Below are positions 1 through 30,720 of a stretch of DNA of 64,000 nt, in pieces. Each line of letters starts with the position of its first letter. Within the stretch, counting starts at the first letter, position 1. The DNA lies in contig NC_134030.1 of assembly GCF_964204645.1 (NCBI RefSeq), forward strand, positions 18,436,210 through 18,500,209. The letters run 5' to 3'. The position numbers and the translations under genes are program-made. This stretch comes from Tubulanus polymorphus (Eukaryota > Animalia > Nemertea). A model generated the notes under the pieces. The model did no database searches. It was not told where the DNA came from and saw only the letters and a list, made by a program, of their open reading frames with translations.

Positions 1-3000
1 CATCGACTCAACAAGTTACATGTGACCCTCCAGCTGTCGTTCAAAAACTATCAAACTCTCAGTGGAATATAACGATACCTACCGTAAATAGTACCACAAC
101 TGACTATAGAGGGCGGTGTTTAGCTGACGGTAAAAATGAAAGGGTCATTGATGTCGCTGGTTATCATCACGCCGGTCCAACTGATGAACCAGGTAAGATT
201 CTACGTAGGTCAGAACTCACCGGATTTTATCTGAATGCCAGGTTTTCTGAGTACAGAATGTTACAGTTTTGTCCCTGAAGTCAAAATCAACCAACATACT
301 CTCAAAATCCTAAACCACCGATGTATATCACGGTTGATCAAATCGATTAGTTTTAGATCCAGATGGAGGTAAAGTGTTCGGTGCTGTAATCGGTGTACTG
401 ATATTACTGATTCTGATAACACTGTTTATACTGTGTCTTTGTGGCTGCTGTAAGTTTTACCTAAAACCATCATTTAATCTAAGAAAAACAATAATAAATA
501 AACTGCAGAAATAGAATACTGTATTATTTCTAATTGACAGTGCGGTACAGAAAACCCCATGATGAACTGTGTAGATGTGGAAATTGTAAGTTCTGTAAAA
601 ATTCATATACATAATGTTTAAAATTGAAGAACAGCTACATTTAAAATTGCGTACAAGGCTTCAGGGGTCCATCCAAAATTATCCACTTTCCCCTCTGTAA
701 AAACGTACTCCCCAGTGATGAAAGAGTACTTGAAGGATGGGTCACTGAGTAATAACAACGGTTGTTTGTGTACGTACATCTGTATGAACTACGCATTATT
801 AAAACAGAAAATATCATTATGTAAGATAAAACGCTGTACATTTGTGTAATAATCCTGTGTACCAGTACTGTGTTTCTATAGAAAACCTGCTGATAAACTG
901 TTTAGTTGTAATTGTCGCACCAAGAACCCCCGAATAACAGTGAACTATGTGTTTGTTGTTGCTGTAAGTTCCATAGAAAAATACCATCCCAGAATCTTAG
1001 AAAGGTTGACTGCAAAATAAAATACCATATTATTTTTTTTTTGTTTTCAGTCACTCCTTTCCGCACTACTGATGATCCAGTGGATTCTACTCAAGGTAAT
1101 GAAGATAACTACTTTAGCAACAATATTTTCCTATATCTATTACTGTATCATGAATATACAATTATTTAGATAATATATGACACCTGACTGTATTTGAAAT
1201 TGTAGCATGTTTTTATATTTTATCATAAAATAAGTTTATTCTAATGCAATTGTTTTTACATTATATAATCATACTATAGGATACGTACATGTTGTTACAA
1301 TGATTTAAATATATAAAGGACCAATGGTCCAGTGGCTCGCCAAACTGGTGTGAAGTAAAATATTTGTTATGTATAGGCTACTAGTACGCAAAAATTAATT
1401 TCATTGAAAATTAAAAAAAGAAAAATATACATGTATCAAAAAGGACTTAATTTTGGTCAGTGATAACTGACTTTTTAACGAGAATGAAATCTTCGAGAAA
1501 TTGATTATGGGAATTTTTGTCTCAACAAATTAATGTTCATTATCTTAATACATCCCTGGAATGACATATAAAACTAAATATAAACATATAAAACTATAAA
1601 ATATAAACACATAAAACTATGAGTGACCAAGTTAATGCAAATTTGAGGCCAAAAAATTTATTGCCTGACTGACATGGTTTGTAATAATTTCATTATAGGA
1701 TTGCTTTTAGTTGGCAGGCAAGCTTTACATCTTCACTCCAGACAAATCGTTGTTACGCGCGATATACACCGTAGCGCGTTTTGACTGATACATACACGCA
1801 GTGAACACGAGAGTATAAGGCGATATTGCATACGCGACTGTACACGTCTCTTTTCAACGCGAACGCTCATCACTGTGCCACGAACTAACATAAATAACAA
1901 ACTAATATAACAAACTAATTAAATAATCAGGCTTCAAAACGGATCGTTAATGCGAACGTCAATAAAATGACTTCAATTAATGATGACAAAACAATTATTT
2001 CAGTCCAGACATATCTTAGAAAATTCGATGCTATCAGCTGATCAGTATCATCAGTGAATCAGCCGTGTGGCGAACACGGAAGTAAATTTCCGCAATTTGA
2101 AACCAGAATTTTGTCAGATATCGTGATTCAACGTTACGATATGCACGGGATTTCAAAACTAGATGAATCATTGAACATATCGCACACAACAAATCGTTAT
2201 ATCATACGCCTTGAGTATAAGTATTCGCGTTAGAAATGATGAATATGAAACTCTTCAATTGTGCCGCCATTTTGTTTAGCGAAATAGCGCACTTTGCTGA
2301 TCCACCTCATTTACATATTCAACGAATGCTATGACGTCATGATGGAGTCTTTGAAAGCCCATAACTACCGAAAAAAGCGTCGGATCTTAGCGAGATAAAA
2401 TTCTTCGGACACAGATAGCATTGATTTTCACATGTGTAAATTTGGACAGTTGAAGATGCTGCATAAAAAACGTGCAAAGATAAATCGAATTTTTGAAACT
2501 TTTTGGTTGATTTCTCAAAAATATGAAACCCACGGCTTTCAACTTTGCGCACCATAAAGAAAAACAAATTACGAACTATATTTTTGCCGTTCCGTTCAAT
2601 TCGCCAATTAGTAGTGAAATCACAGGCTACTGAAATTGCGTTTGAGAGTGCTAAAAATAGCTTTGAGCGTAGTCTATTTAAGCATACGAATGATTATCGA
2701 TCGGCCAGACCGTTGACATTGCCAAAAATGTAAGAACAAGTCAGCGATGACGGTACAAAGAAAGCCGGTACTTGTGTTATGTATCACCCTAATGAGTTAC
2801 AAAAGTTAAAAGAGAACAAGTGAAAGAAAAAAGAAACAAGAAATTTAATTTAAATAAATTATTTGACGCCTGCGAAAAAATGTAGAATTTTTGGGATAAG
2901 CTAATGTGGAATTGCAAATTTGAAATCGAATCTTTTAAGAAATTTGGGGAATTATGAGATTCGGTGATTGGGCAGGTGATACAGGTCTTCGACTGCAGTA

Positions 3001-4784
3001 GTCTGGTTTAATTTTTTTATTGAAAATTGTCAATAATTGATAACTTGCGACCGACTTCATTCACTATTGCCTCTAAGCTGGTCTGCAACTTCATTGCCTC
3101 CATAGTTGAAGAAAGCGCTCTTCTGATGTCTGCTTCATCATGACTTCGAGCATATCGTGTGGCCTAGCCAGCCGGCCTGGCCGGTCACCGGCCTTGGCTG
3201 TCACTCGATAACCTCTTGAGTCTGGGTTGATGTAGACATTGTCATTTAAAATAACTTGTTTATGTTATTCTGTATGAATTACGCATGTGTCTTGTATGTT
3301 GTATTTTCTTATTTTAAAATTTGTAACTTTATTGAATTTGAACTCTATTTGAATTTTATATGTAATAAGGATCAATAAAGAATTGAATTGAATTGTCACC
3401 TAATATACGTGCCATCAGAGGACGCGGAGCCGTATATGACAGCTATGCTATTATAAATTGCTAATCTTACGAAACCTGCATACCCCTTATATCGAACATC
3501 TTCTAAAACATTTGAATATTGAAATTATATATTTACACATTTTTATATTGACCGCTTGTAGGCGCCGATGAAATTCACGCCGGCCCTACACAGATCGTAG
3601 ATAGCTTCGTAATTCCACCGGCATCCCCATGTCAGGGTCTTGCTTTTATATCAGACTTCAACATCGTGTATACATCCGCCATTTTGACCGAATAATCCGA
3701 TTTACTTATCATTTCTATTTATGCCTGCCGCTTCTGATATAATCATACATCCATTACTATCACAATACGTCTTCTAATGATATTCAATGCAATATAACAT
3801 TTCGACGTTCAAATAGAAGTCATTACATAATCACAGGAAGCCATTCTACATCTTTGTCAATAATATTTTGCCAAATAGCTTTCATGTGTACACATAGACC
3901 TGTGACGTTTTGCACGTCGATTTACGGTTGTCGTTTGTAAAATGACGCTGAATGGTTAACATTGTTTAGGTTTCATAATGGTAACGTTTTATAAGCGTCA
4001 AAAAAACAAAGAGAACTTATAGAAAATAAATCATTACAAAAACGTAAAAATATCATGAACACATTATGTATCTATAACTTAATGTGAGGAGTAATGTAAA
4101 TTGTTTGTTTTGTTAAATCCTTCCATAACTAGCGGAATTTTGTCCGCAAAATAAGCTTTGCTATATATGAACTGTCTTCCTGTGGCTTTAAGAACATTCA
4201 CTTTTATAGAACTCGAAAATTTCTAGACCTTCTTTGAAACTGATGAAGATAATTAGTTAGGTAGAATGAAATGCTGAATTATTCTTTATTCACAGTGCCG
4301 TTGAGACCAGTTGATAATGAACCAGGTGGATTTACTGATGATAATGAGGATGCCTCCTCAGATGAACTGTGTCACTGTTGCTGCTGTGAGTTCTATAAAA
4401 AATACCTTCTATGAAACTGATAAAGATTGATATTCAGTAACTGAAGAATAAACTGCTGTATTATTTTCTATTTGCAGTGATGTTAAGGAAACATGTTGAT
4501 TGTCTGTGTAGACGTGATAGCTGTAAGTTGTATAACATTAAAACTAATGATATCACACAAAATCAAACGTTGAGTTATATGATGTTTTAAGTGTTGATAG
4601 AGGGCGAAGAAATTATATCTCGAAATATATCAAAAATTAATTTCCGATTAATGTCCAAAATAACGACCATGCATCAGTGAATTTGAGATAAATGAACAAG
4701 AATTCATTAAAGCGTACGGTGTGAGCGTAGCAGGGTGAATGGCAATCTCACCCTCGGGATTGGATACTATTATGAAGACGTTTA

Positions 4785-4825
<41 letters not shown>

Positions 4826-7800
4826 GGCTTTCATGAATTATACCAATAAAGCTTTCGGGAACATAGTTATAGTAGGGTTCAGTTATCAGCGGTTAAACAA
4901 TATCAACAAGTAGTGCATGGAAGCTGGAGTTCATGGCCAGTATTGCAGTATCAGACAACCTGCATGGATATGTACATACATGAACATAAATAGAAATTAT
5001 ATAAATAAACAAGTGTGGAAGTGACGTATGTGTCTACCTAGGTAAACCAAATATGGTGCAGCCATGGACTCCGTTGAGTGCAAAAATATATTTTTAGAAA
5101 ATTGTGACGTGTGCAGACACGTCATTGCCCATACATGGATGGGAGGAATGTTGTGACGTATGAATACGTCACAAGCCATGAATTCCAAGCCATATGTGGA
5201 AGAGGACCTGCACACGTTACACAAGAGAAAGTGATATAAATAGGGAGGTTTTTGTAAGCACGAGATAGTAAAGAGAGCTACATCTGTTTACATCTAGTAA
5301 GAAGAAATAAACGAAAGATAATTTTAGAAATTGTTAAGTTATTTCTGGGAGCCGTGTAAGAAGTCAAGACCAAGGACTGAGATCTGATCTAAGAGAGTGT
5401 CCTCGCACCATCATTGAGAGGAATTATTACCACGACGCTAGTTGGACAACCCAACCCGGATTCACAGCACTGGAAGATATACGGACCATAACATAGGTGG
5501 AGAATCCATACCCACAACACTGGTGGAGAACAGTGGTGTATCCTGCACCTCTCGCTGCCAAGCGATCTAGTATATTGGTCAGTGAACACGGGGTGAAGTA
5601 AAAGTATAAGATGAACGTTACATTGCGTAACCGTAATAACATAAAATACGGGCCGCTACCGCGGGTTAAGTTGAAATATTGCGGATAACTCGATCTGTGT
5701 ATAAAAATCATTCCCGTTCAGATTTAAGGAGTAATGATATTCGGTTCCTGTCCGTAATATGCAGTTGATATCACCAGATGTACTTTGTTTTTGTGAATTG
5801 TGAGTTTCTAGTAGAGGGTGATTGTGTCTTGTGATAACTTCGAGAAATCAATGATCAAATAGAATGGTTTTTGCGAAATCGTGTTTTGGATGGTTAGGAT
5901 TGACGGCTAACGAAACGGTTTGCGAATACGAAGCGTAGTGAACTCAATTTAAGTTGATTTGATGAAATGGCGAGTGATCAAGACATTGTGCGTATACTTT
6001 GGAATCAATCGGCGAATGGAAAATCGTGCGGGAAGACGACCTTGGACAAGTTTAATGGACTCCGACCCTTGGACATAAATATAATGATGATGTATTAACT
6101 TTTGCATGCTTATACTGTATAAAAAATGTGTGTTTTTGGTTGAATCGGAAAATTAAATTGAGCGTATTATTGATATTTATTTCCAAATGCTGGGTTTATT
6201 AGATTAGATTACTACGCAGTGCTGATGTATACATCGTTGTTTGTTGCAGGCTTAGGTATTTATTCTAGGAATTTTTTTCCCGATTGTTTTACTCTGGCTA
6301 TATAGTCTATATGATGTTGCGAATGCTATTTTTGCATACGTCTTATTCATAACAGCGTTAACTCGTTCACTGCTATCATGAAGATACCAAACAAATGTCT
6401 GTGGTTATAGGTTAGGTATTTATGTTTGAGTAGTATTGTGGGTATTAGATATATGTTAGTTGTAGATAATAATTTGTGCCAAAGGAATTCTTTGGGGTTG
6501 AGCGCTCAATGGTGAAGCTTACCGGAAGGTTTTAATTGAGAGTATAATTATGAGTTTATAGTTTATGTCGAAATAGTTTTAGTGGATTTGGGAGCCCCTG
6601 ATAAAAAGAGTGAGGGATGCTCAAGGGGTAGTCCTGAAATAGGGCAGAGGTTTGAAGCTTGAGGAATGCGTAGATGATTAATTTATGTGCCAGTAAGAAA
6701 TTCGAGAGTAAAATCCCAGATGAAATCAAATTATATTCCAAGTGATTGATGAATGTTATCATTTCACCAAATGTGATATTTCACTGGATTTTCAGGTAGC
6801 AACATAGAATCATTTTCAAGTCGTTAGGGTACTTAGTTAGGGTACTCATGATTCTCGAAAAAAAAACCAATTTGTCCTTATCTTCCAATCGTCATGATGT
6901 AGTACATTTCAAATTCATTTTCATTACGCTATACGAAAGCTACCCTGCCAAAATCTAATCTTATCATAAATTTGCTATGGTGGCTGATTCAGGACAAGTC
7001 AATATTTTTTAGCCCACTTGGGACCTTAGTGGGCTATTGCGTTCACTTTTCGTCCCTCATCCGTCCGTTCGTCTGTAGACGGAATCCAGTTATTTTTGGA
7101 AGTTCTGAAGACGCTTCAAGGTAATATCTTGATATTTGGTTTACATATGTATCTACCCTAGACACATCCGCAGCCCAAAAACTGGCCCTGTCAGATTCAA
7201 GATGACCGACTGGCAACCATTGTTGTTCGCCAAAATCAGCACTTTTTACACAATTTTCAAGTTTTCGAGGGAAATTTTGAAGACGCTTTGATCAATTACC
7301 TTGATCTTTCACATATAATAATATATTTGTATCCTCTAAGGGCCCATCAGCATGAGAAAAATTGGGTCGATCGGACTCAAGATAACCGTCCTATGACCTT
7401 TTTTGTGCCCAAAAATGTCAATTTTGGCCCAAATTCTGAGTCCTGTACCTTCCTACTGGTTTGCTATTTTACATTGAACATTGTGGTGGCTATTCTATGG
7501 ATAGGGATCTTTAATAGCTGAGACAGTTATTTTTAATGCACCAATTATCACGCAATTGGCGGCCATCTTGGTGTCACCAGTACTCATTCGTAAGTCGAAA
7601 AAGGTTTTTCCACATTATATTGATATCTAACCATATTTTGTTACCACAATCAATTGTAAAGTTGTAGCTCATAATATGTTCTATCATTGTCGTGAGTTTC
7701 AAGGTCAGTGGTGTTTGTATATGGCCACCAGGGGGTGTTGAATGATACATTAACTTAGTATTTTGATATCATATTTGTACCTATGCATATTTTGTTACCG

Positions 7801-10800
7801 CAATCAAGTTCAAAGTTGTAGCACATGACATTGGTTATAATTGTGGTGAGTTTCAAGGTCATTAGTTATTCGGAATGGTCACCAGGGGGCGTTGAATAGT
7901 AGAATAACTTAGTACTTCCTTATTAGATTGGTACCTAGGCATATTTTGTTACCATGATCAATTGCTCCACCAAAAAGCGCAGAAACATAATTTTCTGCAG
8001 TTTATAAGGGAAATTTTGAAGGCGCTTCGATCAATATCCTTGATCTTTCAGACATAGTTTTATTCCCATAGGACCCATCATCATAAGAAAAAAATTGTAT
8101 TACCTAAATTAAAAATCGTATTTCACGCATAACTGGAACTTTCACTCGGCTGACGAAAAACGAAAAGAGCGATTCAGAATTTGAGGGCCTTGTTCCGGAC
8201 AAAAATGAGTTTTTTTGCCCGAAAAAAAATGATTTAAAATAAAATTTGTTTTTAGAACGCGCTGAAATAAATATTTTCTTTTAGCAAATTTTTCTTAATC
8301 GATTTGAAATTTTGAGAAATAGAAATCTCCCCAAAAATCCCAAACTGATTTTATATTTTACAGATGTTGTTAAAATTCAGAAATGTCTGAAAGAAACGTA
8401 CAAACGGATGATCGATGCTGAAAATTACAAAGAGGTTTGGTGGAGCGATAAATTCATCAATTTCAACGACTTCTTCACCCAAGAACACGCGAAAATTCGA
8501 TCCCGAAAAGAGAGAAATGAAAAATGTGAGGAACAGTCAGTGATTTTACCCGATGATTTCGAGAAGCTTTTCTCTCATGACCAGCCCGAAAAGAAGCATG
8601 TGTGCCTCGTAGGTGAACCCGGTATGGGTAAAACTACACAGATAAAAAAGCAAGTGTTGTCATGGGAGAAGTCGCCGTTTCTAATGGGGTTTCCTATGTT
8701 ATTCTATATACCGTTAAATGCTCTGCCCGCTGATAACGCTTGTATTTATACGTACATTTACGAACATCTTTTGAGTCGAGAATTCAGAAAGGTTTCGTCG
8801 GTCGATGCTTTTAAGAGATTCGTACAGGAAAATGCAGATAAATCGATATTTTTGCTAGACGGCTTCGACGGGTTGAAAAACGATGAGGCAAAGGAGGACA
8901 TCGTACACGTGACCAATGGATTACAAAAAGCGCATATCGTCATAACAACACGTGAGTCCGGGGGCAGCATGATCGTCACTGATCCCAAATACACCGTTAT
9001 ATCGATATCCGGCTTCAAACAGGAAGAAGTCATCGAAATAATGAAGAGAAAATTCCCCACGCGCGATCCAAAACAGCTATTTAACAAGCTTAGAGACGCA
9101 GCGTCACCTTTATTTAAAAGTATCTACTACAACCCGCTGATACTACATATGTTTTGTTTTCTGTATATGAACAAGGAAAAAAATTCGATGACGATTCCAT
9201 CCAAACTCACCGATATCTACATCGATTTGACATGTTTTCTGATCAATAAACGCGAGGGCATCAAGTTGTCTGAGAATTGTTTTTTTGACGACATCGAAAA
9301 TTCGGAAGCGCTTCAAGAAATTTGTCAAGTCGCGTATGAGACGCTCCTTCGGCATCAAAACAGCTTCAGCGAAAATCGTCTCAAACTCGAATCGAACATG
9401 ACGGCTTTGACATGTAAGGAGGTGTCGCCGCGACAGAAATCAGACCGCTCCGTCCAGCTGCGGTTCATACACAAATCTGTGCACGAATTTCTGGCGGCGG
9501 TCCACTCGGTCGTGCAATTCAAAAACAGTGATGAAATACCCTGGAACAAATGCGCGTTTGATCAACTACCGGATGAACTTGAAAAATATGGTGAATTATA
9601 CCCGAGATTCATGGCAGGGCTGCTGCATCGTCACAAGCGTAACCGCGGCCTCGGTGAACTGTTCAAGACTTTAATAGATAAACATTTAAAAGCAATCACA
9701 ATAGACGAGGCAAAATATGAGGATTCACTTGTATTTATAGACAGTTCCCTGATGGCGACCCTTCCCGATTATGAAAGCTTCATCGAACTCCAATCTCAAA
9801 GCTTTTGGTTACCCGATCAGTTTTCTATCTACCTGAATGAAGCTGACTGGCCGGACGACGCCATTAGTGAAATAGTTCACTGCATGGAGAAGATGTTAAT
9901 CGTAAATCGATGTAGCATGTTCAAAATGAACATACTCGCAAAAATACTCGAACACAAACAATGCCCGATCGAGGTAGTTTACATGTTTACCAACGAACTG
10001 AAACCCGACCAATTGTTCGCTGATGAATACCGCGCATTAGAAACAGCCATAGCGAGTAACACTAGTCTTCAGGGTATGGTAATCGAGATAGGCGGGGATT
10101 TTCCACCGTCAATAGACACATATAATCCGTACTTGACTTTGTGTCAGAAGAGCAACAGAATGAACTGGTTTGTGGGCCTAGATAAAGACTACATTGGTTT
10201 GTGTTACAAGAAACTCGATTGTGGATGGATTAAGACGAGTCGAGTGATTGAATCTGAAAATCAGTTGACCAGTGGTGATCCATCCACACAAAACATAGAA
10301 GAAATTTTGTCTATCAAAACTGAGGCTTTAAGTGCGAAACTTTTAAGTGATATTCAGAAATCTTATCCATCCCCAAAGCATCTGTCTCTCCGCCTGTCTC
10401 GCGATAAAGGCAAAAATATAATCGGAGAGCTGACAAGTATAGTACCGCGATTGAAAAGCTTACATCTCCAAGACGCAGGAAAAGACGAAGCAATCAATGA
10501 AAATGTGACCGGTGAAGAATTAAGAAATTTCAAGAACGCCTTAGAATGTTCAGAGATCGAAACAATTGAGCTCAATCTGAAGGAACTAACGACATATCAA
10601 TTGAAAGAAATCAGCGATGGCATCGGCTCAATGAAAAATCTAAAACGCCTTTCCTGTCACAGACTTGATTTTGAAATAAGCCGCATTCTAGATCTACGGC
10701 GGCGGCTGACTGTATTATCAATACGTTTGCGGTCAGAAGCCGATGGTAAAGCACTTCTTCGGTATCTAAAAACGGATGCGGTAAATCAGCTCCAAGAAGT

Positions 10801-11083
10801 CCGTATTAGTAGCTATCTTGAAGGAACCGAACAGCATAACGCCATCTTACGACAACTTAAACACGTTTCATCGCTTCGTAGATTAGAGTTCCACGTTTTT
10901 GAAGTGAGGTTTAATACACAGGACGATTTATTCGATATCGTCGAATTAATCGAAAATCTTCCGCACCTTTCTGACCTGTATATCATTTGCCGAGTCGGCG
11001 ACCGCGATATGATAAAAATCTACATCAAATCAAAACTTAAGGAACTCAATAAACGAGTAAGAGTACATTTAGATATTTTATAG
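1..11083 (+). CDS. Predicted membrane-anchored NLR, 5'-partial: Ig-like ectodomain exon + TM + Cys-rich linker + NACHT + LRR-like region
   Basis: Exons <1-192, 357-449, 541-585, 1051-1095, 4296-4385, 4478-4522 and 8364-11083 all have AG/GT boundaries, all introns are phase 1, and they join into one open frame. TM exon reads DGGKVFGAVIGVLILLILITLFILCLCGC. The joining of these exons to the NACHT exon is inferred. Confidence 0.65.
4788..4822. repeat. (TA)n microsatellite
   Basis: Pure TA run. Confidence 0.95.
4900..5530 (+). mobile_element. Possible degenerate LTR followed by a primer-binding site
   Basis: TATA-like tataaata (~5235) and aataaa (~5306), ending ...cacaaca, then TGGTGGAGAA (5521-5530), resembling a tRNA 3'-complementary PBS. 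No second LTR or pol found; 5' boundary uncertain. Confidence 0.35.
7005..8090. mobile_element. Non-autonomous Helentron/HINE-like element with internal tandem units
   Basis: T-run start, short hairpin agcccact...agtgggct, (tccg)-type microsatellite, and repeated ~150-170-bp units (ttttgttacc...gagtttcaaggtca...caccaggggg) at ~7640, ~7790 and ~7945. Confidence 0.5.
8364..11083 (+). CDS. NACHT NTPase + LRR-like terminal exon (NLR-type)
   Basis: Walker A GEPGMGKT (8612), Walker B IFLLDGFDG, sensor-1 VITTR, NPLIL, winged-helix FIHKSVHEFLAA, and C-terminal LxxLxL repeats (LKSLHL, LKRLSC, LRRLEF, LSDLYI). Acceptor ttttacag ends at 8363; the ORF-track start at 8312 is intronic. Confidence 0.92.
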
Positions 11084-17707: not shown

Positions 17708-20700
17708 ATGACGAAGACAAGTTTGTTCTTAATAATCTGCACAGTTTTACTATTGGGAAACTTATACATTGCAGAAACATCTGGTGCTAATACGAATGAA
17801 ATAAGTAAGTTACTGCGGCCTCCGTTACTCGCCTTAGTAATTATATTTCTATCGGAATTGCGAATTCAACCGATGACGTCAGAGTCAGTGCCGTAGAGAT
17901 TTGTCACAGGCCCTATTAAATGTTACTGACAAAAGATAATCAGAAGATTTACAAACTATGGCGGAGAGTCTGTCTGACTCCTACGAGCAATTATCTAATC
18001 TAAGTTAGATAATCGCTCGGAGGTCTGACTCGCTGATTTGACCGCAAACATGATTATTAACGAAATTACGGACCAAAACGTCGCACGAAGAGCAGGTGTG
18101 ACAGACAGTAGTTGCCAATAAGGGCATGCGAGACTAAAATTTGATTTTCAGTAATAGCAGCGGCGGCCACATTAAACACAACCAACGTATATTGAATAAC
18201 AACAATTTTATATGATAGTTTGACTGTGATTTAGTTGGTAAAGACAATGGTTTTACAAGCCTACGTTACGTGGTTGCAAAATTGGGCTTGAAAATGTGAT
18301 ATTCGTGCAGTAATTTTCACCAAGAATCTGATGGTTACACGGGATCGTAGAGCTTCAGAGATATCCCTAGAAACAACCAGTATCAGGGCTGGGTGAAGCA
18401 GTAATTACGATAATTGAAGAAATCTCAAACTTCTAAATTGTACTGATAGAATTTATTATTTTGAAACCACAACGTTTCGGCTGTTGATAAACAGCCATCA
18501 TCAGTAATGACGATGGTGGTCATATTGAAAAACCGCTATATTTCAAATGTAAGGGGTGATCTCGATTGAATCTATGGATTTACTTTTTCCTTTGGCCCTA
18601 AGGGGACCATGCCAAAGGGAAACTCCAGAAGTGGTGTTTATTTGACAGATTCGGTGAATGGGCTCCGTCATCAGTAGATATGGGGCAAAATCATTGTGAA
18701 CGATTTTGGAATTTTCATAATTCAAGAAATATATTGATACGGTTTTAAGTAAATACTTCCTCGATTTATCCGCTGATTATGTGTCAAGAATGCGGGCAAG
18801 CTAATGACGCAATTAGCGGAGATTACTGTATTCATTCGTGATGATTTATCTTGCACTTAGCTAGCTGTTAGAAATATCCAAAGTCTATTTTGTCATTTGA
18901 AACTGTTACCCAGTTGTGTTACCCAGTTATTGAATAGTTATGGTATGTATAGTTTTTATACGGTATACTGACTTCAGTCTGTTATAAGTGTGAATGATTC
19001 AGTGTACTTTATACTTGACTTACCCCTATAAACTGTACCTATATAAATATCTGTTGACTGACCACAGAGAGTCCCAGCCACAGTACTTTAATAAATGTAC
19101 GTGCTTTGTAATATTATACGTCTGGAGTCGTCGTTAGTTTTATGGGTTTTAGTTCGACCCTGGAGCTTGGATCCGAAAAAGAATTGGGTATTTCGGCCCT
19201 GGAGTTTCATCCGTAACAGAAATTGGGGGCTCGTCCGGGAGCCACGGACTTTGAAGACGACTTTTTGCACATTTGGACGTGTTTATGGCAGAACCAATGA
19301 AACGAGGAAAAGTTTTTGCAGTACTTCTGTTGTTATCTGTGCTGTTTTATAAAGGTACTGTACCGTTTCATATTTGGTATCGTTTTGGGCTCGTAGATAT
19401 GTTGCCCTCTGTGGAATCGTTTATTGATTCGCCAAGTAGCGAACAAATTGAGACTTTACGTAAAAGTGAATTAGTTCAGCTTGCTGAGCATTATAACGTC
19501 TCATTTAGAAAATCACAGAAAAAGGAACATATTAAACTCTGTATTATAGAACATTGCGTCAAATCTGGTCTTTTAAGCGACGTTGAAATGCAGCAGGCGA
19601 TTCCTGAGAAGACAGAAAATGAGGCCGGAGAAACGGAAGCTACATTAATTCGTAGAATGGAGCTCGAGTTCGAAGCGAAGGAACGAGAACGAGAACGCAA
19701 ACACCAATTAGAAATCAAACGTCTTGAGAGTGAACATCAGCTGCGCTTTTTGGAGTTGGAGTCACGTGCTCCGCAAGGCTTTCCGGCACATAGGAATGAG
19801 TTCGATGTCACTCGTCACATACGTCTAGTACCGAAATTTCAAGAAGCTGAAATAGATAAGTACTTTTTACATTTTGAGAAAGTAGCCAATAATCTAAAGT
19901 GGCCTAGAGAGTGTTGGACATTGCTACTCCAAAGTGTTTTGATTGGAAAAGCTCAAGAAGCATATTCATCTCTCTATGCCGAAGAAAGTGCTGACTATGA
20001 TATAGTTAAGACTGCTATATTAAAAGCTTACGAACTTGTACCGGAAGCTTATAGACAGAAGTTTCGTAATCGAAAAAAATCTCCCAATGAAACATATGTT
20101 GAGTTTGCCAGAGAAAAGGAAACGTTATTTAGTCGTTGGTGTGATTCAAAAGATGTAAAAGACTATGATTCTTTGAAACAATTGTTGTTAGTAGAGGAAT
20201 TTAAACAATGTATTAATAGTGATATTAGAACATATGTCGATGAACAGAAAATAGATAGTTTGTCAAAAGCTGCCAGCTCTGCTGATGATTATGCTCTGAC
20301 ACACAAAATCAGCTTTGAGTCAAGTTCTGCTAGTAATTTTCCGGCTTCGGATTCTCGAAATGTGTCAAAATTTCAAAGAAATTTCAATAATCATAGTAAT
20401 ACGCAAAATTGGACTCAGAGTAGAAGAAATAAAGGTATTTGGTGCAATTACTGTAAAAAATCCGGTCATACTCTAAGTACATGTTTTTCTCTTCAGAAAA
20501 AGAATGAGAGGGGAGAGAACCAGAGATCAGAGACAAAACCGATCGGTCTTACAGCAACTCAACGTATTAAATCCAACCCTGCAGTTCAACCATTGTATAG
20601 CAAGAGTTATAATCCATTTATAGTAGACGCTTTATTGTCATTCGAAAGTACCGATGAACCAGTGAGTATTAAATTACTTCGCGATACGGGTGCCTCTCAA

Positions 20701-23700
20701 ACTTTAATGTTGGAGAGTCTTTTACCGTTATCTGGTAGTACTTTTATCGGTGAACATGTTCTCATTAGAGGAGTAGGTTCGGAAATTATCAAAGTTCCAC
20801 TCCACAGAGTTTATCTGGATTCTGATTTAGTTCGCGGTTCTGTAGTTGTGGGCGTTCAGTCGTCACTACCTATTTTGGGTGTATCTATGCTCCTCGGTAA
20901 TGACTTGGCTGGTGGTAGAGTACACATTAACCCTTTAGTCACTACAGATCCTCTACTTAATGTAGATACTGAAAGTTTAGAGAAAACATATCCTGGAATT
21001 TTCCCATCATGTGTAACTACTAGGGCTATGTCGCGATGTGCTGATTAGATAATGGGATCTAAGCCCTGTTTAGAAAACAAAGAGTTTTCTAATGAAATGG
21101 TAGATTCGTTTCTTGGTCGAATTTTTGACGAAACGTCTACCGGTTTCATTTCACCTAATAAAGATGTATCATCAAGGTCAAACCTTATTGATTTGCAGAA
21201 TGTCGAACCAGAGTTCAAGACATTTTTAAATTCTGCTTCCGATTCAATTGAATCATTAACTGGTACTCCTTCTGGATATTATTTTCAGTCTGGAGTGTTG
21301 ATGCGTAAATGGCGACCTCCAGATATTCCAGCAAGTAATGAATGGAAAGTTTATCATCAGATAGTTGTTCCAACACCATATCGGAATGATATTTTAAGTT
21401 TAGCTCATGAAACTTCGCTTGCTGGTCATCTGGGAGTCACCAAGACTTACAACAAAGTCTTAAATCATTTTTTCTGGCCTGGTTTAAAGCGTGATGTTCA
21501 AAATTTTTGTGCATCCTGTCGACCATGCCAGGTGTCTGGTAAGCCTAACCAGATAATACCCCCTGCACCTCTTATTCCGATTCCAGCGTTCGGGGAGCCG
21601 TTTGCAGAGGTTATTTACGATTGTGTAGGTCCATTACCGAAAACTAAATCAGGGTTTCAGTATTTGTTGACAATAATGTGTAAAGCAACACGTTTCGCTG
21701 AAGCTATACCGTTAAGGAATATAACTGCACCACTTATCTGCAAAGCATTGGTTAAATTTTTTACGCTGTTTGGGTTACCGACATCGGTGCAGTCTGATCA
21801 AGGTTCGAACTTCGTATCCAATATATTCCAACAGGTTATGTATCAGTTAGGAATTAAACAAAATATTTCTAGCGCTTACCACCCTGAATCTCAGGGAGCT
21901 CTTGAACGTTTCCATCAGACCCTCAAAACAATGCTTCGAACATATAGTACACAACATGAGAAAGATTGGGATGAGGCAGTACCATTTCTACTTTTTGCTA
22001 TGAGAGAAGCAGTTCAAGAATCCCAGGGATTTAGCCCTTTTGAGTTGGTATTTGGTCACCAGGTTAGAGGTCCATTAAAACTAATTAAAGAAAGATGGCT
22101 TGATAAAACTGATGAAATTAATTTGTTAACATATATTTCCAATTTCAAAGAACGGTTGTATTCTGCATGGGAATGTGCTCGTATGCACCTAAAGCAAGCA
22201 CAGGGACGTATGAAAACCTGGTATGACAAAAAAGCTCGTAATAGAGAGTTCAAAAAAGATGATAAAGTTTTGGTGTTATTTCCATTGAAAGGTCATCCGT
22301 TTAAAGCTAAATTTCATGGTCCGTATGTAGTGCAAGAAAAAGTGAACGATGTGAATTATATTGTTTCAACGCCTGACCGTAGAAAAGCTACTCAATTATG
22401 CCATGTTAATATGTTGAAACGTTACATAGATCGTCCACAGTCTGTCGGTATGATTTCAATTGCTGAAAATAATTCTAATGAAATATGTATTTCAAATTAT
22501 ATTGAAGATCCATTGCATCTAGAATCTGATTTCGATAGTTCTAAATTAGTTCCTATTGCACCTGGTTTCAATAACAGCAAGGCAATAAACAATATAGATG
22601 AAAAAGTTTGTCATTTGGGTTCAAAAGAAAAAGATCAATTATTGCAACTTATTAACGACAATAAGCATCTTTTTACAGATCAACCTGGTCTAACATCTTG
22701 GGCATCTCATGATGTCGATGTTGGGGATGCTACTCCTATCAAACAGCATCATTATAGAGTGAACCCACAAAAAGGTGAAATTATGAAACAGGAGGTTATT
22801 TCTATGATTAAAATGGCCGTAGCTGAGCCTAGTGAAAGTGAGTGGAGTTCTCCCTGCTTGCTAGTACCCAAACCTGGAGGTAAGTGGCGTTTTGTAACTG
22901 ACTTTAGAAAAGTCAATGCTGTGACTAAGTCTGATAGTTACCCAATGCCACGAGTCGACGATCTTATTGATCGCATTGGCCGAGCCAAATATGTCAGTAA
23001 ATTCGACCTAACAAAAGGGTACTGGCAGGTACCTCTTTCTGAAAGAGCTAAAGAAATAAGCGCTTTTGTGACCCCTGACGGATTATTTCAATATCGTGTA
23101 ATGCCTTTTGGCATGAAGAATTCTGCCCCCACCTTTCAGCGGTTAATGAACAAAGTAGTGCGCGGGCTAGTATGTGTTGTAGTATATTTGGATGATATCA
23201 TTGTTTTTTCCGACACTTGGGAAGAACATCTACAACAAATAAAAGATCTGTTTCATAATCTCACCGAAGCTAATTTAACTGTTAATTTAGAAAAAAGCGA
23301 ATTTGGTAAGGCCACAGTTAAATATCTAGGCCATATAGTGGGACAAGGTCAAGTACGCCCCATAGATGCAAAAGTCAAAGCTATAATTGAGTATTCACCA
23401 CCTTCTAACAAGCGTGACATCATGCGTTTTTTAGGAATGGCGGGATACTATAGAAAGTTTTGTAAAAATTTCGCACAAGTCACTGTTCCTTTGACCGAGT
23501 TGCTGAAAAAGGATGCAAAATTTGACTGGAGTGAAACTTGTGAGAAATCTTTTCAATCGGTAAAACATTTGTTGATGTCAACTCCTATTCTCGCAGCTCC
23601 AAATTTCGATAAACAATTCAAGCTTACTGTTGACGCCAGTGATTCGGGTGCTGGCGCAGTTTTAGCTCAAGATGATGATGACGGTTTGGAACATCCTTTG

Positions 23701-26700
23701 TGTTTCTTTTCAAAGAAGTTTGTAGCTGCGCAGAAAAATTACTCGACAATTGAGAAAGAATGTCTGTCTATAATCTTAGCTTTGGAACATTTTGATGTTT
23801 ATACAAGAATGAAAATCTTTCCAGTAGTTATATTTACAGATCACAATCCATTAACTTTCTTGTACAAGATGCAGAACAAGAATAAGCGTCTCATGGCTTG
23901 GAGTGTGATATTGCAGTCGTATGACTTAGACATAAGACACATTAAAGGACGCTGTAATGTGGTTTCAGATGCCCTTTCGCGCTCATAATATCATGTAATA
24001 ATTAATGTGTAATGTATTGTTGAAATATTCCGAATTGTTGTGATCTGAAGATTAAATATGTGTTTGTTTGTATTTTTGTCGAATTTTGTAGAATGTATGT
24101 ACATGTATTTTTTCTAGAAATACATCTCTGAATCTTTTAAGGGTGAGGGTGTTACCCAGTTGTGTTACCCAGTTATTGAATAGTTATGGTATGTATAGTG
24201 TTTATACGGTATACTGACTTCAGTCTGTTATAAGTGTGAATGATTCAGTGTACTTTATACTTGACTTACCCCTATAAACTGTACCTATATAAATATCTGT
24301 TGACTGACCACAGAGAGTCCCAGCCACAGTACTTTAATAAATGTACGTGCTTTGTAATATTATACGTCTGGAGTCGTCGTTAGTTTTATGGGTTTTAGTT
24401 CGACCCTGGAGCTTGGATCCGAAAAAGAATTGGGTATTTCGGCCCTGGAGTTTCATCCGTAACAAAACAAATAGGGGGCCCGTGATAAACTCTGAAAAGA
24501 TATCGCCATATCTCCTCCAATGACTTATAACATTATAAAGTGCAAAAGTCGTTGTAGTTTAGGCAATGGATTCTTCTCTCCTGACCAATACTGCTTATCT
24601 TTTGCTATAGTTTCACTACATGTGGCCTCCACCGAGCACGGGACATGTTTAGTTAGCGAAAGACTGGCGTTTGAACTCCCTAAAAGACCCGAAATCCTAG
24701 AAACATGCGTTGCGTAACATTTACTGATTTATTAAAGGATTCTCTTATATTCCATTCCGTCAATCACAGATTTACTACAAATTCTAAAACATATTTCTAG
24801 AGACGATTCGAGTTCAGCGACCGGCTGTTCTAATAGTCGTCTTTTCATTAACGAGTCTTACAATGCTTGGATGATGAAATGTAAACATTATTCTCTCACA
24901 GCAGAGGCCAGCTTGTCTTACAGACGTCTTTTCATAAACGAGTGTTTTTAACTCTTTACGTGCTAACTTTCTTAATTTCAGATCGTGCTAACTTAATTTT
25001 TTAAAAAAGAATTTTCAAAAATAACGGGTTTTCATACTTCTAGAGGGTCTAATACCCTTCCCTAAACTCAAATAGGATAACATTAGTTTCAAATTCTAAG
25101 AAGAGCGTCGCGTTTTCTAATAATCGATTTTTTATGGACTTTTTCTGGAAAACTGTTTTTTATATTTAGTTGTGAAACCACCGCGAATGAAGTCCAGATA
25201 TCTGACGTCACGGCTCCACAATGCCCTCGTTATCCCGGAGATCATCGAAGAAGAGATACACATTACTAGACGGAGCGAAGGTAGAGAGACAGAGAGATGA
25301 GTTTAAAGACGACCTGCTCGATAATTTAATGTTTGGGGCCCAAATATAGCGTGGATACTAAGATTCTTTGTGTGGTGAATTACCGCTCTGTTTATACCCC
25401 TGGGGGTGGTATTAACTTAAACCCGGGAGACTTACTCAATTAATATTCAGTTAAAATTAGGTTAAAATTCCCTATCGTTATTTAAACATAAGGCGGACGT
25501 TGCATCCAATTTATTGTCTCCACGTTTTTGTGGAACTCTTTGGAAAATTGATCTGAACAAATTTAAACACAGTCTGATCTTTATAACCATGATACAGCTT
25601 TTACTATGAACAATTTTTTCATACAAATTTAAAGATTTTTATCATCATTACTTAAGTTGAAATATAAAACCAGTAACTGAATGATTGACATAATCTGAAT
25701 ATGTTTATTTACAGACGGTCTCCCAGTGATCGCTGATGCATCGGGGAATGATTTAATGAATTATGAGGTGAAATTGAATGAAGGAGAATCAAAAACTTAC
25801 ACGTGTAAACACGATAAAGGGAGAATAAACTGGGAATATCTATTAGAAAATGATGATGAGTGGAAACTTTATTCATCCGAGAAACAATTAACAATCCGTG
25901 GCGATATGACACTCAATAAATCACAAATCAGATGTTTCTCCAGTATCGGAAAGTCCGTGAAAACGTCAGCAAATGGTTTAAAAGTAACAGTTATTCCCAA
26001 GCCTAAAACTACACCGGGTGACCCTACTGGTAAGTGTAAAAGGCGGGAGAGCAGTTTATAGATCCCCCTATGACGTCATTAACACAATCAAGCATGTTTA
26101 AGTGTATAATTTTTCTAGGTGCGGCTCGGAGCTGGAGGCGAGTAAACGACACGACTGTTCATATGATATACAATTACAATGTAAAAACAACTGTCACGTG
26201 TAAATGTGGTAACGATGACGCAATACATGCTACTAGACTAACCGGAAACACGTGGTCTATTCAGATCCCCGATAATAAAACCTGCACGTATAAATGCACT
26301 GATAACTTTAATATAGACATCGAAAACAAAGGTTTGTACATGATAATTATTCTGAATATATAGTTCTCGAATGGCCGCTAGGAGTGCTGATTTGTTTATG
26401 TTTTCAGATGATACTGGTCGATATTTCAAGAACTGGCGAGTTGAAGGTCGAGTGGTGAAATGGACCGCGCAACAACCTGGAATCGTGTTCACTGTTGCCC
26501 ATCGTTTTAAAGCTAACAATCGATTCCTCAGCGACGGAAATGTCGCGAGCGAAGCTGTTAACGATCAAATGAGTTTAAATTTGACGTTTCCGACAAATTT
26601 GACCGGAAAAGTGGCAGTTATTGTGAAATTCACGTGGAAACATGGTGCAACAACCCGCAGCATGGAAAGAGAATTTACCTTTAAAATCGGTAAAGATGGC

Positions 26701-28937
26701 AGCACTGTCGTGGAAAATAGCGAAACAGGTAGGAGTAAGAGTTAAAATACTGGCCGCTAGGGGGAACTAGTACCTATCTACTAACAGTTAAAAGTTGCGG
26801 TTGTTGAACTACCATAAAAGCGTAAAACACAAATTTTAGCATCATTTTTCATCATCAGATATAAAACAAGGACTGTTTTAATATGACTATTTCTATTTCA
26901 ATCACCACATGTCATAATAAACTTTTTTTCAACTGGCCCGAACGTCCTAGTGATGTCACAGCCTTTACGGCTCTGTTCAGGTCCCTATAATCGAACTAAT
27001 AGTGGTAGAATTGTCAACTGTTAGACGTGAGGTTTCGAAGCCTGAATTTATTTTTCATTTTTCCTTTCAGACAAAGCAAATACTGATCCACCAAAGGTGA
27101 GTATCTAGTTATTTTATTGTATAGATAGTCGAGCTGGATGTCAATTTATTCAGTTGTTTGTCTTTATTTTGCATAACATGCATTTCAAGTTTATATTGTA
27201 TACTGCGCATTGTATACAGACTTCATTGTCAATGACAATGCGATATTTACCATAAAAGCAATTTGAAATTTAATTTCAATTCATTTGTTTTTATTTTGCA
27301 TTACATGTATTACAAGTTTAGTATAAAATCTTACTTTGGGAGATATCCGTGAAATATCAAACTTCATTATCCTATCACTTTTAAGCTTTCAAGCCTCCAA
27401 TACCGACCAGAATGGCCTAAAATTGTCTTCAATTCCTACCGTTTTCCGAAGGAGGTCCCCAAATCCCCTGTCAATGGCTACCGCATTCGTGAGGCATGGA
27501 TACAGTTCTCTGGCAGTGGTTGCCTCCACAAAAATCCCCGTCGCTCTACGATCTTGGTCTAACATCAGACACTCGGTGAAGGATAACGCAGCCCGTAATA
27601 TTGAGTGCCCTTATGCGATTTGGAACACTCTTGATCCACGTCTAAACCTGTCGTGATTTAAACACAGTACATAAGCTATTTTCATATAGGATACCACGTT
27701 TTAAATCATTACGGGTTGAATATTGTTGATGATCGCAGTAACAAATATGCGATTAAATGATCGTTCGTGATAGTAATTTAATCATTGTTATATCTTTCAG
27801 ACGACATCGGACCCCAATCACTGGATTGTTATCGGCCTCATATTCTCATACATCGTCGGTGGAGCGGCTGGATACTTTTTGATCGTTGCTATCGCTGTTA
27901 TTACTATTCGCAGGTATGAACTCGACATACCCTCCCCCACCCCCACCTCCCGGTATGAACTCGACATACCCCCCCCCCCCCCGTGTTGATAGGAAAAACC
28001 CACAGTTGTTATACTTTGACGGTTTCGAAGTGTTGACTAAACTTCAGCTAGATCTTAGTCGATCTCCTTCTATCGCCATCGATATATATTTAAATACAAC
28101 ATCGAATTCGTTGTAAGTTAAGGAGAAAAGTCAGTAAGTCTGGATGATGATAAAAATCAAACCGACCGGTGGGTTAATTTAAACAGTTAACGATGTTTAC
28201 TTTTAAAAATAAATGCCGGGATCACGAGATCGGGACTCGAACCTACTGTGCAAAACCAGTTTTTGCGATGAGAGTCTTAGGTGTCTGTGTCAAGACTTTT
28301 ACGAAAATCAGAGCTTAAAAGAGAGCACTCAACGTAATACCATTTGTCATTAAAATGTTTGGTTGTACGTTTGGCACCAATTGTGGAATAGTGCAAAATC
28401 GGTACTAGATTTCTGTTATTTTGCAGTTCACAACCTTTTCGAAATACGTTGAAATTAACTGTAAAAAATGCTGCATAAATTACACATTTCAGATGCAGAC
28501 GACGTTCGTCCGGTGAAGGTCATGTGGATACTTCAACACAACCGCAACAGCTTGAAACCGGTGAAGGTCATGTGGACACTTCAACAGCACAGCAACAGCT
28601 TGAAACAACAAATGACGAGTTGAACATCTACGAAGACCCGGACGACAGAATTCCCGAGAATGTTTCAAAAAGAAAACTTTTGAGAAATACTGGATTACAA
28701 CAAAGTCATAAAGCCATGAGAGCCGAAAAGGAGAACGATACAACTCCTCACATGGCTATGGAAGCCGGTAAGGGCAAAGATACAACTCCTTATATGGATA
28801 TGGGACCTGGGATAGAAGAGGACACATACATGAGCACTGAAGGCCCGATAGACGTGACAACTCCTAGCGCCCGTGGAGATACAGACACAGATCAATACAT
28901 GAATCCTGAAGCTTTGAAGAAGACGACGTATCCTTAG
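17708..28937 (+). CDS. Type I Ig-superfamily receptor, copy 1 (SP, Ig, Ig-like, FN3-like, TM, Tyr-motif tail)
   Basis: Exons 17708-17804 (signal peptide), 25170-25280, 25715-26029 (Ig with C...W...C), 26119-26331, 26408-26728, 27071-27096, 27801-27913 (TM WIVIGLIFSYIVGGAAGYFLIVAIAVITIRR) and 28493-28937 are phase-compatible. Tail contains IYEDP, YMDM, YMST and YMNP. Confidence 0.8.
18470..18505 (-). ncRNA. Minimal hammerhead ribozyme core (Penelope type)
   Basis: Minus strand reads CTGATGA-T-GGCTGTT-TATC-AACAGCC-GAAAC-GTT: conserved core plus a perfect 7-bp stem II. Confidence 0.6.
18904..19218 (+). repeat. 5' LTR
   Basis: Direct repeat of 24150-24464; contains tatataaa and aataaa. Confidence 0.97.
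19399..21048 (+). CDS. gag: Gag (capsid/SCAN-like region, CCHC knuckle) + aspartic protease
   Basis: CNYCKKSGHTLSTC zinc knuckle; LRDTGA and LLGND protease motifs. First plausible ATG at 19399 (ORF track opens at 19273). Confidence 0.9.
   Translation: MLPSVESFIDSPSSEQIETLRKSELVQLAEHYNVSFRKSQKKEHIKLCIIEHCVKSGLLSDVEMQQAIPEKTENEAGETEATLIRRMELEFEAKERERERKHQLEIKRLESEHQLRFLELESRAPQGFPAHRNEFDVTRHIRLVPKFQEAEIDKYFLHFEKVANNLKWPRECWTLLLQSVLIGKAQEAYSSLYAEESADYDIVKTAILKAYELVPEAYRQKFRNRKKSPNETYVEFAREKETLFSRWCDSKDVKDYDSLKQLLLVEEFKQCINSDIRTYVDEQKIDSLSKAASSADDYALTHKISFESSSASNFPASDSRNVSKFQRNFNNHSNTQNWTQSRRNKGIWCNYCKKSGHTLSTCFSLQKKNERGENQRSETKPIGLTATQRIKSNPAVQPLYSKSYNPFIVDALLSFESTDEPVSIKLLRDTGASQTLMLESLLPLSGSTFIGEHVLIRGVGSEIIKVPLHRVYLDSDLVRGSVVVGVQSSLPILGVSMLLGNDLAGGRVHINPLVTTDPLLNVDTESLEKTYPGIFPSCVTTRAMSRCAD
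21052..23988 (+). CDS. pol: Pol: integrase, reverse transcriptase, RNase H
   Basis: HHCC (AHET..GHLG..CASCRPC), IN DCVGP/SDQG/ERFH, GPY/F, RT YLDD, RNase H DAS...E...TDH. Same frame as gag-pro, separated by one TAG. Confidence 0.95.
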   Translation: MGSKPCLENKEFSNEMVDSFLGRIFDETSTGFISPNKDVSSRSNLIDLQNVEPEFKTFLNSASDSIESLTGTPSGYYFQSGVLMRKWRPPDIPASNEWKVYHQIVVPTPYRNDILSLAHETSLAGHLGVTKTYNKVLNHFFWPGLKRDVQNFCASCRPCQVSGKPNQIIPPAPLIPIPAFGEPFAEVIYDCVGPLPKTKSGFQYLLTIMCKATRFAEAIPLRNITAPLICKALVKFFTLFGLPTSVQSDQGSNFVSNIFQQVMYQLGIKQNISSAYHPESQGALERFHQTLKTMLRTYSTQHEKDWDEAVPFLLFAMREAVQESQGFSPFELVFGHQVRGPLKLIKERWLDKTDEINLLTYISNFKERLYSAWECARMHLKQAQGRMKTWYDKKARNREFKKDDKVLVLFPLKGHPFKAKFHGPYVVQEKVNDVNYIVSTPDRRKATQLCHVNMLKRYIDRPQSVGMISIAENNSNEICISNYIEDPLHLESDFDSSKLVPIAPGFNNSKAINNIDEKVCHLGSKEKDQLLQLINDNKHLFTDQPGLTSWASHDVDVGDATPIKQHHYRVNPQKGEIMKQEVISMIKMAVAEPSESEWSSPCLLVPKPGGKWRFVTDFRKVNAVTKSDSYPMPRVDDLIDRIGRAKYVSKFDLTKGYWQVPLSERAKEISAFVTPDGLFQYRVMPFGMKNSAPTFQRLMNKVVRGLVCVVVYLDDIIVFSDTWEEHLQQIKDLFHNLTEANLTVNLEKSEFGKATVKYLGHIVGQGQVRPIDAKVKAIIEYSPPSNKRDIMRFLGMAGYYRKFCKNFAQVTVPLTELLKKDAKFDWSETCEKSFQSVKHLLMSTPILAAPNFDKQFKLTVDASDSGAGAVLAQDDDDGLEHPLCFFSKKFVAAQKNYSTIEKECLSIILALEHFDVYTRMKIFPVVIFTDHNPLTFLYKMQNKNKRLMAWSVILQSYDLDIRHIKGRCNVVSDALSRS
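24150..24464 (+). repeat. 3' LTR
   Basis: Direct repeat of 18904-19218. Confidence 0.97.
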
Positions 28938-30270
28938 TTGGTGGAAGATACCGATGAACCTGTGGAAGATGATAATTAACTTTATTCGTATGCTTCTGTG
29001 CAATATACAACTCCATATATGGATATGAAAGCCGGGAAGGGCAAAGATACAACTCCTTAATAGATATGGAAGAATTGTACTCAAACCGTAAATAGAAAAT
29101 GTTAATCTGCACAGATTTAACCTTTTAAATTGTTAGATTTAATTGTGCGAAGACAAATAGTAATGTGTGGGTTTTTATTCAAATAGATTTTATTTGCTGT
29201 TTTTGTTTTTTGTAAATATAACGAGCTTTCGGGCGAAATCTCGTAATGATTATTGAGTTAATTAGGAATAGATAAGATGGGATTCTCAACTTTAGGATGG
29301 TTTGTAAATAGGTTTAATTGTATTAGGTATATAAACCTAGTGCTGGGAAAACGCCCATAACATCGCAATCGGCACTAAACTATGTATAAGGATTATTTTG
29401 AATTGATCAGGATTCTTAACTTAATAGGTCTTAAACCTCTAAAATTGTTTTACTTTAATGAGTAAGCGCGAAGACAAATAGTAATATGTAGGTTAATTAG
29501 ATTTTTTTGTACAAGCTTAAGTCATTTATAGCAAATATCTAGATTCTTTTTTGTAAGTACGCGTGAGATTTTTAGAGAAAAGGGAGTTATGGGATAAGGA
29601 TTGTTTTGAAGAGATCAGATACGATTCGTAATTTTAGGACAGTTTGTGAATAGATTTGTAATAGGAATATAACCTCTAGTGCTGGAACAACACCGTGAAC
29701 ATCACAATCGACACAACGACGAAGATGAAGCTGATAAATTATTAGCACAATGACCTTACCGATAGAAATACATTTTAGAAATATATAAATAACCAAGGAT
29801 TTAGTTAAGGTCCGACGTTTTAAATATAGGCGATATTTGTAAAGAGATCGGTATTTTTACTTCACGCTCCGAGTGAAAGACTAAATAAAAGAATATTCTA
29901 TAACTATATTCTGCAGCTTTGTTTGAATTATTTCGGAATTAAAGATTTTTTGAGCGGCGTTTTGTTAGTTAACATATTACAATAATTCCTTTTGGTGAAT
30001 AATGGATTGATTTTTAGTAGAGACCCACAGTTTAAAGAGCGAAGATCGATTAATACCAGTTAGACATGATACTGTGTCCAGAGTCCGATGGCCAGCCCAC
30101 AGACGAATTAGACGTTTTTTCTTGGTGAAAAACTTTTGCGATGTGTTTTGTTTTGCCGTGTCTGTTGGAGTCAGAAAACAAAACGCCGAACAGAAAAACG
30201 TGTTTTCCGAAACTTCACCGCTTCTTTTGGGAACAACATTTTTTGTCGTCGAAAACGTAATTTTCCAATA

Positions 30271-30430
30271 CCCAGTGAAGTTCATTACTTGTTCCTTATT
30301 CCTTATTCCGTTAATTATTGAGAATTCATCTCCCAATAAGGAACAACAAGTTACTTGTTCCTTGTTCCTTATTGGGAGATGAATTCTCATTAAGTAACGG
30401 AATAAGGAACAAGTAATGAACTTCACTGGG
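30271..30430. mobile_element. Palindromic MITE (duplicated at ~37407-37570)
   Basis: cccagtgaagttcattacttgttccttattcc ... ggaataaggaacaagtaatgaacttcactggg; nearly the whole element folds back. Confidence 0.75.
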
Positions 30431-30457
30431 GGTATTTTCTAAATGAAAATGAACTTT

Positions 30458-30720
30458 TCAAACTACGATGGATGTACTGGGGTTGATAATGAAATAAAGG
30501 CATAATAAAGCATTTTTGTCATTTATGAAGGTTTCACAGATCATGATGATATCTAGAACTATTATTTGCTTCGCTAAATTATCGATTATTAATTTCAGTT
30601 CTTGTAATTTACACGTAAGACTATGAATATTGACTTGTAGGACAGTCAAGTTTGATGGATTAATCTTAAACTTGCTACCAAGTTTATTAAGTTCAACATA
30701 GGGACATCGTTCATTATCAA
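30458..30720 (-). mobile_element. LINE ORF2 AP-endonuclease 5' fragment (duplicated at ~37596-37860)
   Basis: VLQVNIHSL..KL.EL......DIIMICETF matches the N-terminus of LINE APE domains. Confidence 0.7.

Follow-up and report, generated by a model that had tools for sequence, protein, structure and literature searches.

A nemertean gene model in which an immunoglobulin-like transmembrane receptor continues into a NACHT-LRR exon

Gene structure at the 3′ end of the receptor gene

The 64,000-nucleotide stretch of the Tubulanus polymorphus (Nemertea) genome analysed here (the window; G000:C6:18436210-18500209) contains, at its positions 1-11083, the 3′ end of a candidate cell-surface NLR gene 61 kb in length. 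In this gene, exons for an immunoglobulin (Ig)-like ectodomain, a transmembrane (TM) segment, and a Cys-rich linker precede a single exon for a complete NACHT-LRR module. The exon chain predicted from the DNA is identical to that of a database protein of 2186 amino acids (P0017), with 100% identity for each exon. The features of this part of the window are as follows.

1-192, + strand: 3′ portion of the exon of the type D ectodomain module, last of the 11 domains and nearest the membrane (P0017 1086-1174)
357-449, + strand: TM exon, 93 nt, phase 1-1, with a Cys cluster at its end (hydropathy peak 3.38; P0017 1177-1191)
541-585, + strand: juxtamembrane micro-exon, 45 nt, basic, with Cys (homologous exon in paralogues)
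866-963, + strand: out-of-frame remnant of a Cys-rich linker exon, 98 nt (repeat families D3 and D4; match to P0021)
1051-1095, + strand: linker micro-exon, 45 nt (frame; match to P0017)
4296-4385, + strand: acidic linker exon, 90 nt, with a Cys cluster at its end (P0017; joint 4385^4478 in run X1)
4478-4522, + strand: final linker micro-exon, 45 nt (P0017; flanking joints both in one X1 contig)
8364-11083, + strand: one exon encoding all of NACHT (NBD, HD1, WHD, and HD2), the LRR, and the stop (Pfam, structure model, and joint 4522^8364)
8870-8872, + strand: extended Walker B codon, Glu changed to Gly (Glu in 14 of 14 aligned paralogues)

The original prediction had placed six small exons with canonical phase-1 splice sites ahead of the NACHT exon and had read a stop-free frame through all of them; both statements held. 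All six small exons have GT donors and AG acceptors, the acceptor of exon 1 lying 5′ of the window, where the module D exon begins ca. 75 nt before the first position. The internal small exons (93, 45, 45, 90, and 45 nt) are all divisible by 3 in length, and only the phase-1 reading of each small exon is free of stops. The acceptor AG of the NACHT exon ends at 8363, and the exon starts at 8364 in phase 1. When spliced together, the small exons and the NACHT exon gave 1075 codons with a sole stop at 11081-11083, and the predicted peptides were all reproduced. An acceptor shifted one base later, to 8365, gave 29-81 stops and destroyed the frame. The signal peptide sought upstream was represented by a signal-peptide-like hydrophobic segment at the start of P0017, located at C6:18386576, ca. 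49.6 kb upstream of the window. The remnant at 866-963 is part of a repeated exon unit that is in use in paralogues, where the copy is 2 nt shorter, and is skipped in P0017.

Read evidence for the join into the NACHT exon

Contigs from four public runs, none of them recorded as RNA, were aligned to positions 3900-9800 of the window. One contig of run X1, with a depth of 161, contained the GT..AG joints 4385^4478 and 4522^8364, with 36 and 30 letters, respectively, on the shorter side, whereas X1 contigs that retained the intron had depths of 18-24. The predicted junction 4522^8364 was thus present in reads; neither joint was observed in the other three runs over this region. This spliced contig was assigned to the gene because exons 5 and 6 (4296-4522) have no second genomic copy with more than 85% identity and the contig was aligned at ≥92% identity. 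The lack of a further copy above 85% also ruled out a retrocopy or a paralogue as the source of the junction contig. The X1 contig is direct support for the join into the NACHT exon and speaks against an obligatory death-domain exon. However, the annotation probably used the same X1 reads, so the read support and the database model are not independent.

As predicted, the NACHT exon has no death-fold domain of its own, and none was found in the tail, in the linker (which also matched no Pfam family), or in the two long introns, whose five open stretches gave no Pfam match. A death-domain exon within these introns was rejected, since no family match and no Pfam match were obtained there and the read joint skips the intron. 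Positions 4829-5727 in the last intron are repeat-derived, resemble the remnant of a long terminal repeat (LTR), and showed high depth from divergent contigs in all four runs.

All read-backed joints lie 3′ of 4296 and the database model may be partly predicted, as would be the case if the annotation had merged two genes, one for an Ig-TM receptor and the other for a cytosolic NLR that takes over no more than the final linker exons. However, no terminal exon of the family other than NACHT lies between 449 and 8364, and exons 5 and 6 follow the TM exon in paralogue models too. Exon 6 is spliced directly to NACHT, and the same join is found in three named paralogues. Such a merge is, therefore, highly improbable.

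Ectodomain, membrane segment, and linker

Eleven modules, each with two or four cysteines, make up the ectodomain; they fall into four types and are arranged as ABC-AB-AB-ABC-D. Most sister genes contain one ABCD. A Pfam search with the whole of P0017 gave I-set (E 1.6e-9), Ig_2 (E 5.4e-9), and C2-set (E 3e-7). As single modules, A, B, and C gave weak Pfam Ig matches, and module D, the one inside the window, gave no Pfam match of its own. Look-alikes in the Atlas all belonged to the Ig clan, and a PDB sequence search with the ectodomain returned weak Ig matches only. Among paralogues, the distal modules A and B share 76-78% identity compared with 92% for the proximal module D, the most conserved module of the ectodomain.

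Judged by hydropathy rather than by a dedicated predictor, P0017 has one strong hydrophobic segment at residues ca. 1177-1200 and none in the tail. The Cys-rich linker comprises 80 residues, and 12 Cys occur in the 91 residues from the end of the TM segment to the NACHT exon product. P0017 thus shows the pattern of type I Ig-superfamily proteins, namely a signal peptide, an Ig-like ectodomain, and a single TM segment with a basic inner side.

It is very likely that a signal peptide, 11 Ig-like modules, one TM segment, a Cys-rich linker, and NACHT-LRR are combined in one type I membrane protein. Support for the proposed type I receptor whose tail is an entire NACHT-LRR module came from the P0017 model, its signal peptide, its single TM segment, and the joint 4522^8364 in the reads. 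A role of this protein as an immune receptor is likely, and we infer that recognition outside the cell is coupled to the NTPase.

The NACHT-LRR tail

Pfam assigned NACHT to the tail with 55.7 bits (cut-off, 26.7; E 6.9e-15), and the matches to NLRC4_HD2 and LRR_14 (E 8e-4) were weak. The structure model contained confident beta-alpha repeats at ca. 470-905 of the NACHT exon product, with a pLDDT (predicted local distance difference test) mostly of 60-90 across the LRR half. In Foldseek, the best match of the tail was NLRC4 (4kxf, E 2.8e-13), followed by NAIP and NLRPs. The fold resembles NLRC4 minus its CARD, and the tail is 11-12% identical to mammalian NLRC4/NAIP. Template modelling scores to NLRC4/NAIP were low owing to the poorly modelled NACHT half. 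The mammalian proteins share the order NBD-HD1-WHD-HD2-LRR with the tail but are cytosolic with a CARD or BIR N-terminus; in P0017, neither BIR nor another effector N-terminus was found, and a signal peptide and a TM segment occupy that place instead.

Walker A, the sensor 1 Arg, and the WHD His are all intact. The Walker B Gly in the assembly is unique to this copy among the aligned paralogues. The contigs covering 8871 all read A (Glu); since these may be paralogous, the change is unconfirmed in reads. The dN/dS (ratio of nonsynonymous to synonymous substitution rates; simple pooled pairwise estimate) was below 1 in every region, with the tail maxima in HD2 and the C-terminal LRR. Within the tail, the LRR changed fastest (dN 0.33-0.35, dN/dS 0.8-0.9).

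Paralogues and shuffling of the NACHT-LRR exon

The genome holds more than 20 copies of the module D exon, the majority of them within an array at C6 21.7-22.8 Mb. About 13 of the genes with this exon terminate in a long helical tail and lack NACHT. This tandem array (G000:C6:21.68-22.83 Mb) contains ca. 17 Ig-TM genes, spaced by ca. 37 kb over much of its length. In most array genes the helical tail has 600-1100 residues; for the NACHT-less sisters its structure model had a pLDDT of 37 and its Atlas matches were below 0.9, and a CARD-like start of this tail is conjectural.

A search of the genome for the TM-plus-NACHT paralogues that had been suggested yielded five further loci, three of them named, so that Ig-TM lies in line with NACHT-LRR at six loci including this gene. 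The join is made by the short Cys-rich linker at three loci (this gene, LOC141906709, and LOC141906642) and by the helical tail at the other three (LOC141906708 and loci on C19 and C9, the latter two deduced from exon order only). About 10 further NACHT-LRR genes encode cytosolic proteins whose N-termini are short and repetitive, and the cytosolic sisters are 62-68% identical to the tail. A RHIM-like core was recognized by eye, as a pattern match, in 5 of the 10 named cytosolic paralogues. The N-termini of P0001, P0005, P0010, P0012, and P0013 (C8, C9, and C56) are distinguished solely by RHIM-like repeats, one to five in number.

All of the ca. 20 NACHT-LRR exons examined start at a common phase-1 acceptor. 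Protein and DNA trees both needed two to three label changes for the membrane-type NACHT exons, and the grouping of these exons as one clade was rejected (p-AU, approximately unbiased test, 0.00044). Repeated cassette swapping and gene conversion both fit the trees, in which direction and order are not established and one label was deduced. These results point to a one-exon phase-1 NACHT-LRR cassette placed behind the ectodomain and TM segment of a tandem Ig receptor family with at least 20 members. A symmetric one-exon cassette that moved between an Ig array and cytosolic NLRs of one genome would provide a route by which such receptors originate.

Broken NACHT-LRR copies with stops were found at G000:C6:17.52, 17.77, and 18.17 Mb and at C12:8.72 Mb; the acceptor context of the 17.77-Mb copy is near-identical to that of this gene. 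With broken copies nearby and the out-of-frame linker exon at 866-963, the gene might be a decoy, a dominant-negative form, or a drifting chimera, formed recently when exons were shuffled within a birth-and-death cluster, and transcribed but weakly functional or inhibitory. The Walker B change and the raised dN/dS of the NBD in membrane-type copies would agree with this, and mutation of the equivalent residue inactivates NOD1, though the same substitution in NOD2 (E383G) is autoactive (PMC4158908). In contrast, the frame of 2186 codons is open over many exons, a spliced transcript exists, the design is present at six loci, and dN/dS stays below 1 throughout. A decoy or drifting chimera is, therefore, improbable.

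Comparison with known NACHT proteins

Animal NLRs are taught as cytosolic sensors. A profile search of 1.8 billion proteins gave no close match beyond the genome's own family; the next matches had E values of 1e-42 and weaker and were NLRs of death-fold, HEPN, or tandem-NACHT design. By hydropathy, an Ig plus single-TM N-terminus was present in 0 of the 146 nearest outside NACHT relatives, and other hydrophobic segments in 2 of the 146. The closest kin are the cytosolic paralogues in the same genome. This comparison suggests, indirectly, that the fusion is lineage-specific and may have arisen separately from the sea cucumber design described below.

The Ig-TM-NACHT architecture is not unprecedented, having been published for a sea cucumber, and the present gene model is already in the public annotation. 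AjNLRC4 of Apostichopus japonicus is an Ig-TM-NACHT surface receptor that lacks an LRR and for which two Ig domains have been called alongside two TM helices; its Ig part binds microbes, and the receptor dimerises and signals via the inner NACHT (PMC8699970). The nemertean protein shares with it the Ig domains outside, the TM helix, the cytoplasmic NACHT, and the lack of a death-fold domain, but has 11 Ig-like modules, one TM segment, a Cys-rich linker, and a full LRR. AjNLRC4 belongs to another phylum, and the 146 outside relatives, an indirect comparison in which AjNLRC4 itself was not aligned, gave no sign of common descent of the fusion. A second sea cucumber protein, AjNLR-new, has the reverse topology (PMC13133943).

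Since AjNLRC4 provides the sole tested mechanism for Ig-TM-NACHT (PMC8699970), the nemertean protein could likewise be a phagocytic or adhesion receptor in which NACHT docks actin or other cytoskeletal partners and is not an oligomerising switch. The absence of an effector domain and the loss of the Walker B Glu in this copy agree with such docking. However, AjNLRC4 has two TM helices and no LRR, whereas in the nemertean tail the autoinhibitory architecture is complete. Since none of the 146 outside relatives has Ig-TM ahead of NACHT, the function of AjNLRC4 need not be shared, and we consider docking quite unlikely.

TM-containing NLRs have been predicted in anthozoans (PMC5094078) and sponges (PMC12909245), where NACHT-LRR is predicted to be membrane-bound, as here. 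The anthozoan forms have three to five clustered N-terminal TM helices with no Ig ectodomain described (PMC5094078), whereas the nemertean protein has a large ectodomain preceded by a signal peptide and crosses the membrane once. RHIM-NACHT proteins of amphioxus and PFD-NACHT proteins of fungi (PMC4262963) resemble only the cytosolic sister genes, in which short N-terminal RHIM-like repeats precede the NACHT cassette. In the literature, we found no paper on this design in a spiralian or on nemertean NLRs of this design.

Proposed mechanism

The variable membrane-distal Ig modules may bind a non-self surface (of a microbe, a parasite, or a foreign cell) and thereby cluster the receptor, while the linker cysteines, probably palmitoylated, would keep the tail at the membrane. 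Clustering would lift the autoinhibition by LRR/HD2 and allow nucleotide exchange and oligomerisation. NAIP, a sensor that lacks an effector domain, nucleates its sister NLR, NLRC4. The tail could act as such a NAIP-like sensor and nucleate either its cytosolic sisters, among them several NLRs with RHIM-like ends, or other partners, the output being cell death, inflammation-like signalling, or phagocytosis. We infer the relay through effector-bearing cytosolic sisters from the lack of an effector domain in the receptor itself. The mechanism as a whole, from ectodomain clustering through the NACHT switch to the relay, is the likeliest of the readings considered, but it is tentative and stands somewhat short of an even chance.

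Several observations weigh against this switch-and-relay reading. The read support consists of a single contig from a single run of unrecorded kind and stops short of the TM exon, and the structure model has low confidence (pLDDT <50) in its NACHT half. In the assembly, this copy has lost the Walker B Glu, a change that the reads do not confirm. The dN/dS of the NBD was 0.63 in membrane-type copies versus 0.36 in cytosolic ones, which fits relaxed constraint. Pfam gave no RHIM match in the cytosolic paralogues, where the RHIM call is visual.

The complete and fast-changing LRR would also suit a tethered sensor or guard. Here, the sole task of Ig-TM would be to position the NLR next to its NACHT-less sisters or at the plasma membrane, cell contacts, or the phagosome, and the LRR would sense a cytosolic ligand or tampering with those receptors. 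The ca. 13 sister receptors with the same ectodomain and a helical tail would be the natural guarded partner. However, the ectodomain is diversified and expanded to 11 modules, beyond the needs of a mere anchor, and dN/dS exceeds 1 in no region; a tethered sensor or guard thus appears unlikely.

A more specific form of the switch-and-relay reading is that binding outside gates an autoinhibited NACHT-LRR whose signal is relayed to RHIM-like sisters sharing the cassette, one NLR exon having been swapped repeatedly among variable Ig receptors, possibly for allorecognition. This form is possible but doubtful. If gating and the amyloid-motif relay were both true, the family would be a modular recognition system without a tested precedent in animals. 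A surface receptor with a whole NACHT-LRR allows a test of whether clustering by a ligand on the far side of the membrane can drive a STAND switch.

Other features of the window

Two tandem receptor-like gene copies, 93-98% identical and related to LOC141907918 (an Ig-TM design with a tyrosine-motif tail), lie at ca. 24900-30900 and 32000-38050 (+ strand). Their tail exons at ca. 28500 and ca. 35630 have many Tyr motifs and in-frame stops, and a signal-peptide-like exon match for these genes is located at 17708-17797, 5′ of a retrotransposon. It is possible that these genes are a paired partner of the NLR receptor.

That retrotransposon is a young LTR element at 18904-24467 (+ strand) with 319-nt repeats that are 99.4% identical (18904-19222 and 24150-24467). 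It contains a SCAN-domain open reading frame (ORF) at 19273-21048, followed by an ORF at 21052-23988 with integrase ahead of reverse transcriptase, an order that we take to recall Gmr1-like Ty3/Gypsy elements. Fragmented ORFs at 42617-45018 (+ strand), one with a DUF1280 match (E 1.7e-20), are probably a decayed mobile element. Positions 49534-50328 (- strand) form an exon for a channel that resembles ionotropic glutamate receptors (Pfam Lig_chan, E 1.6e-21). At 60664-61758 (- strand) and 59995-60684, a mucin-like ORF of Thr/Ser repeats with a weak PAN match adjoins a 19-nt tandem array.

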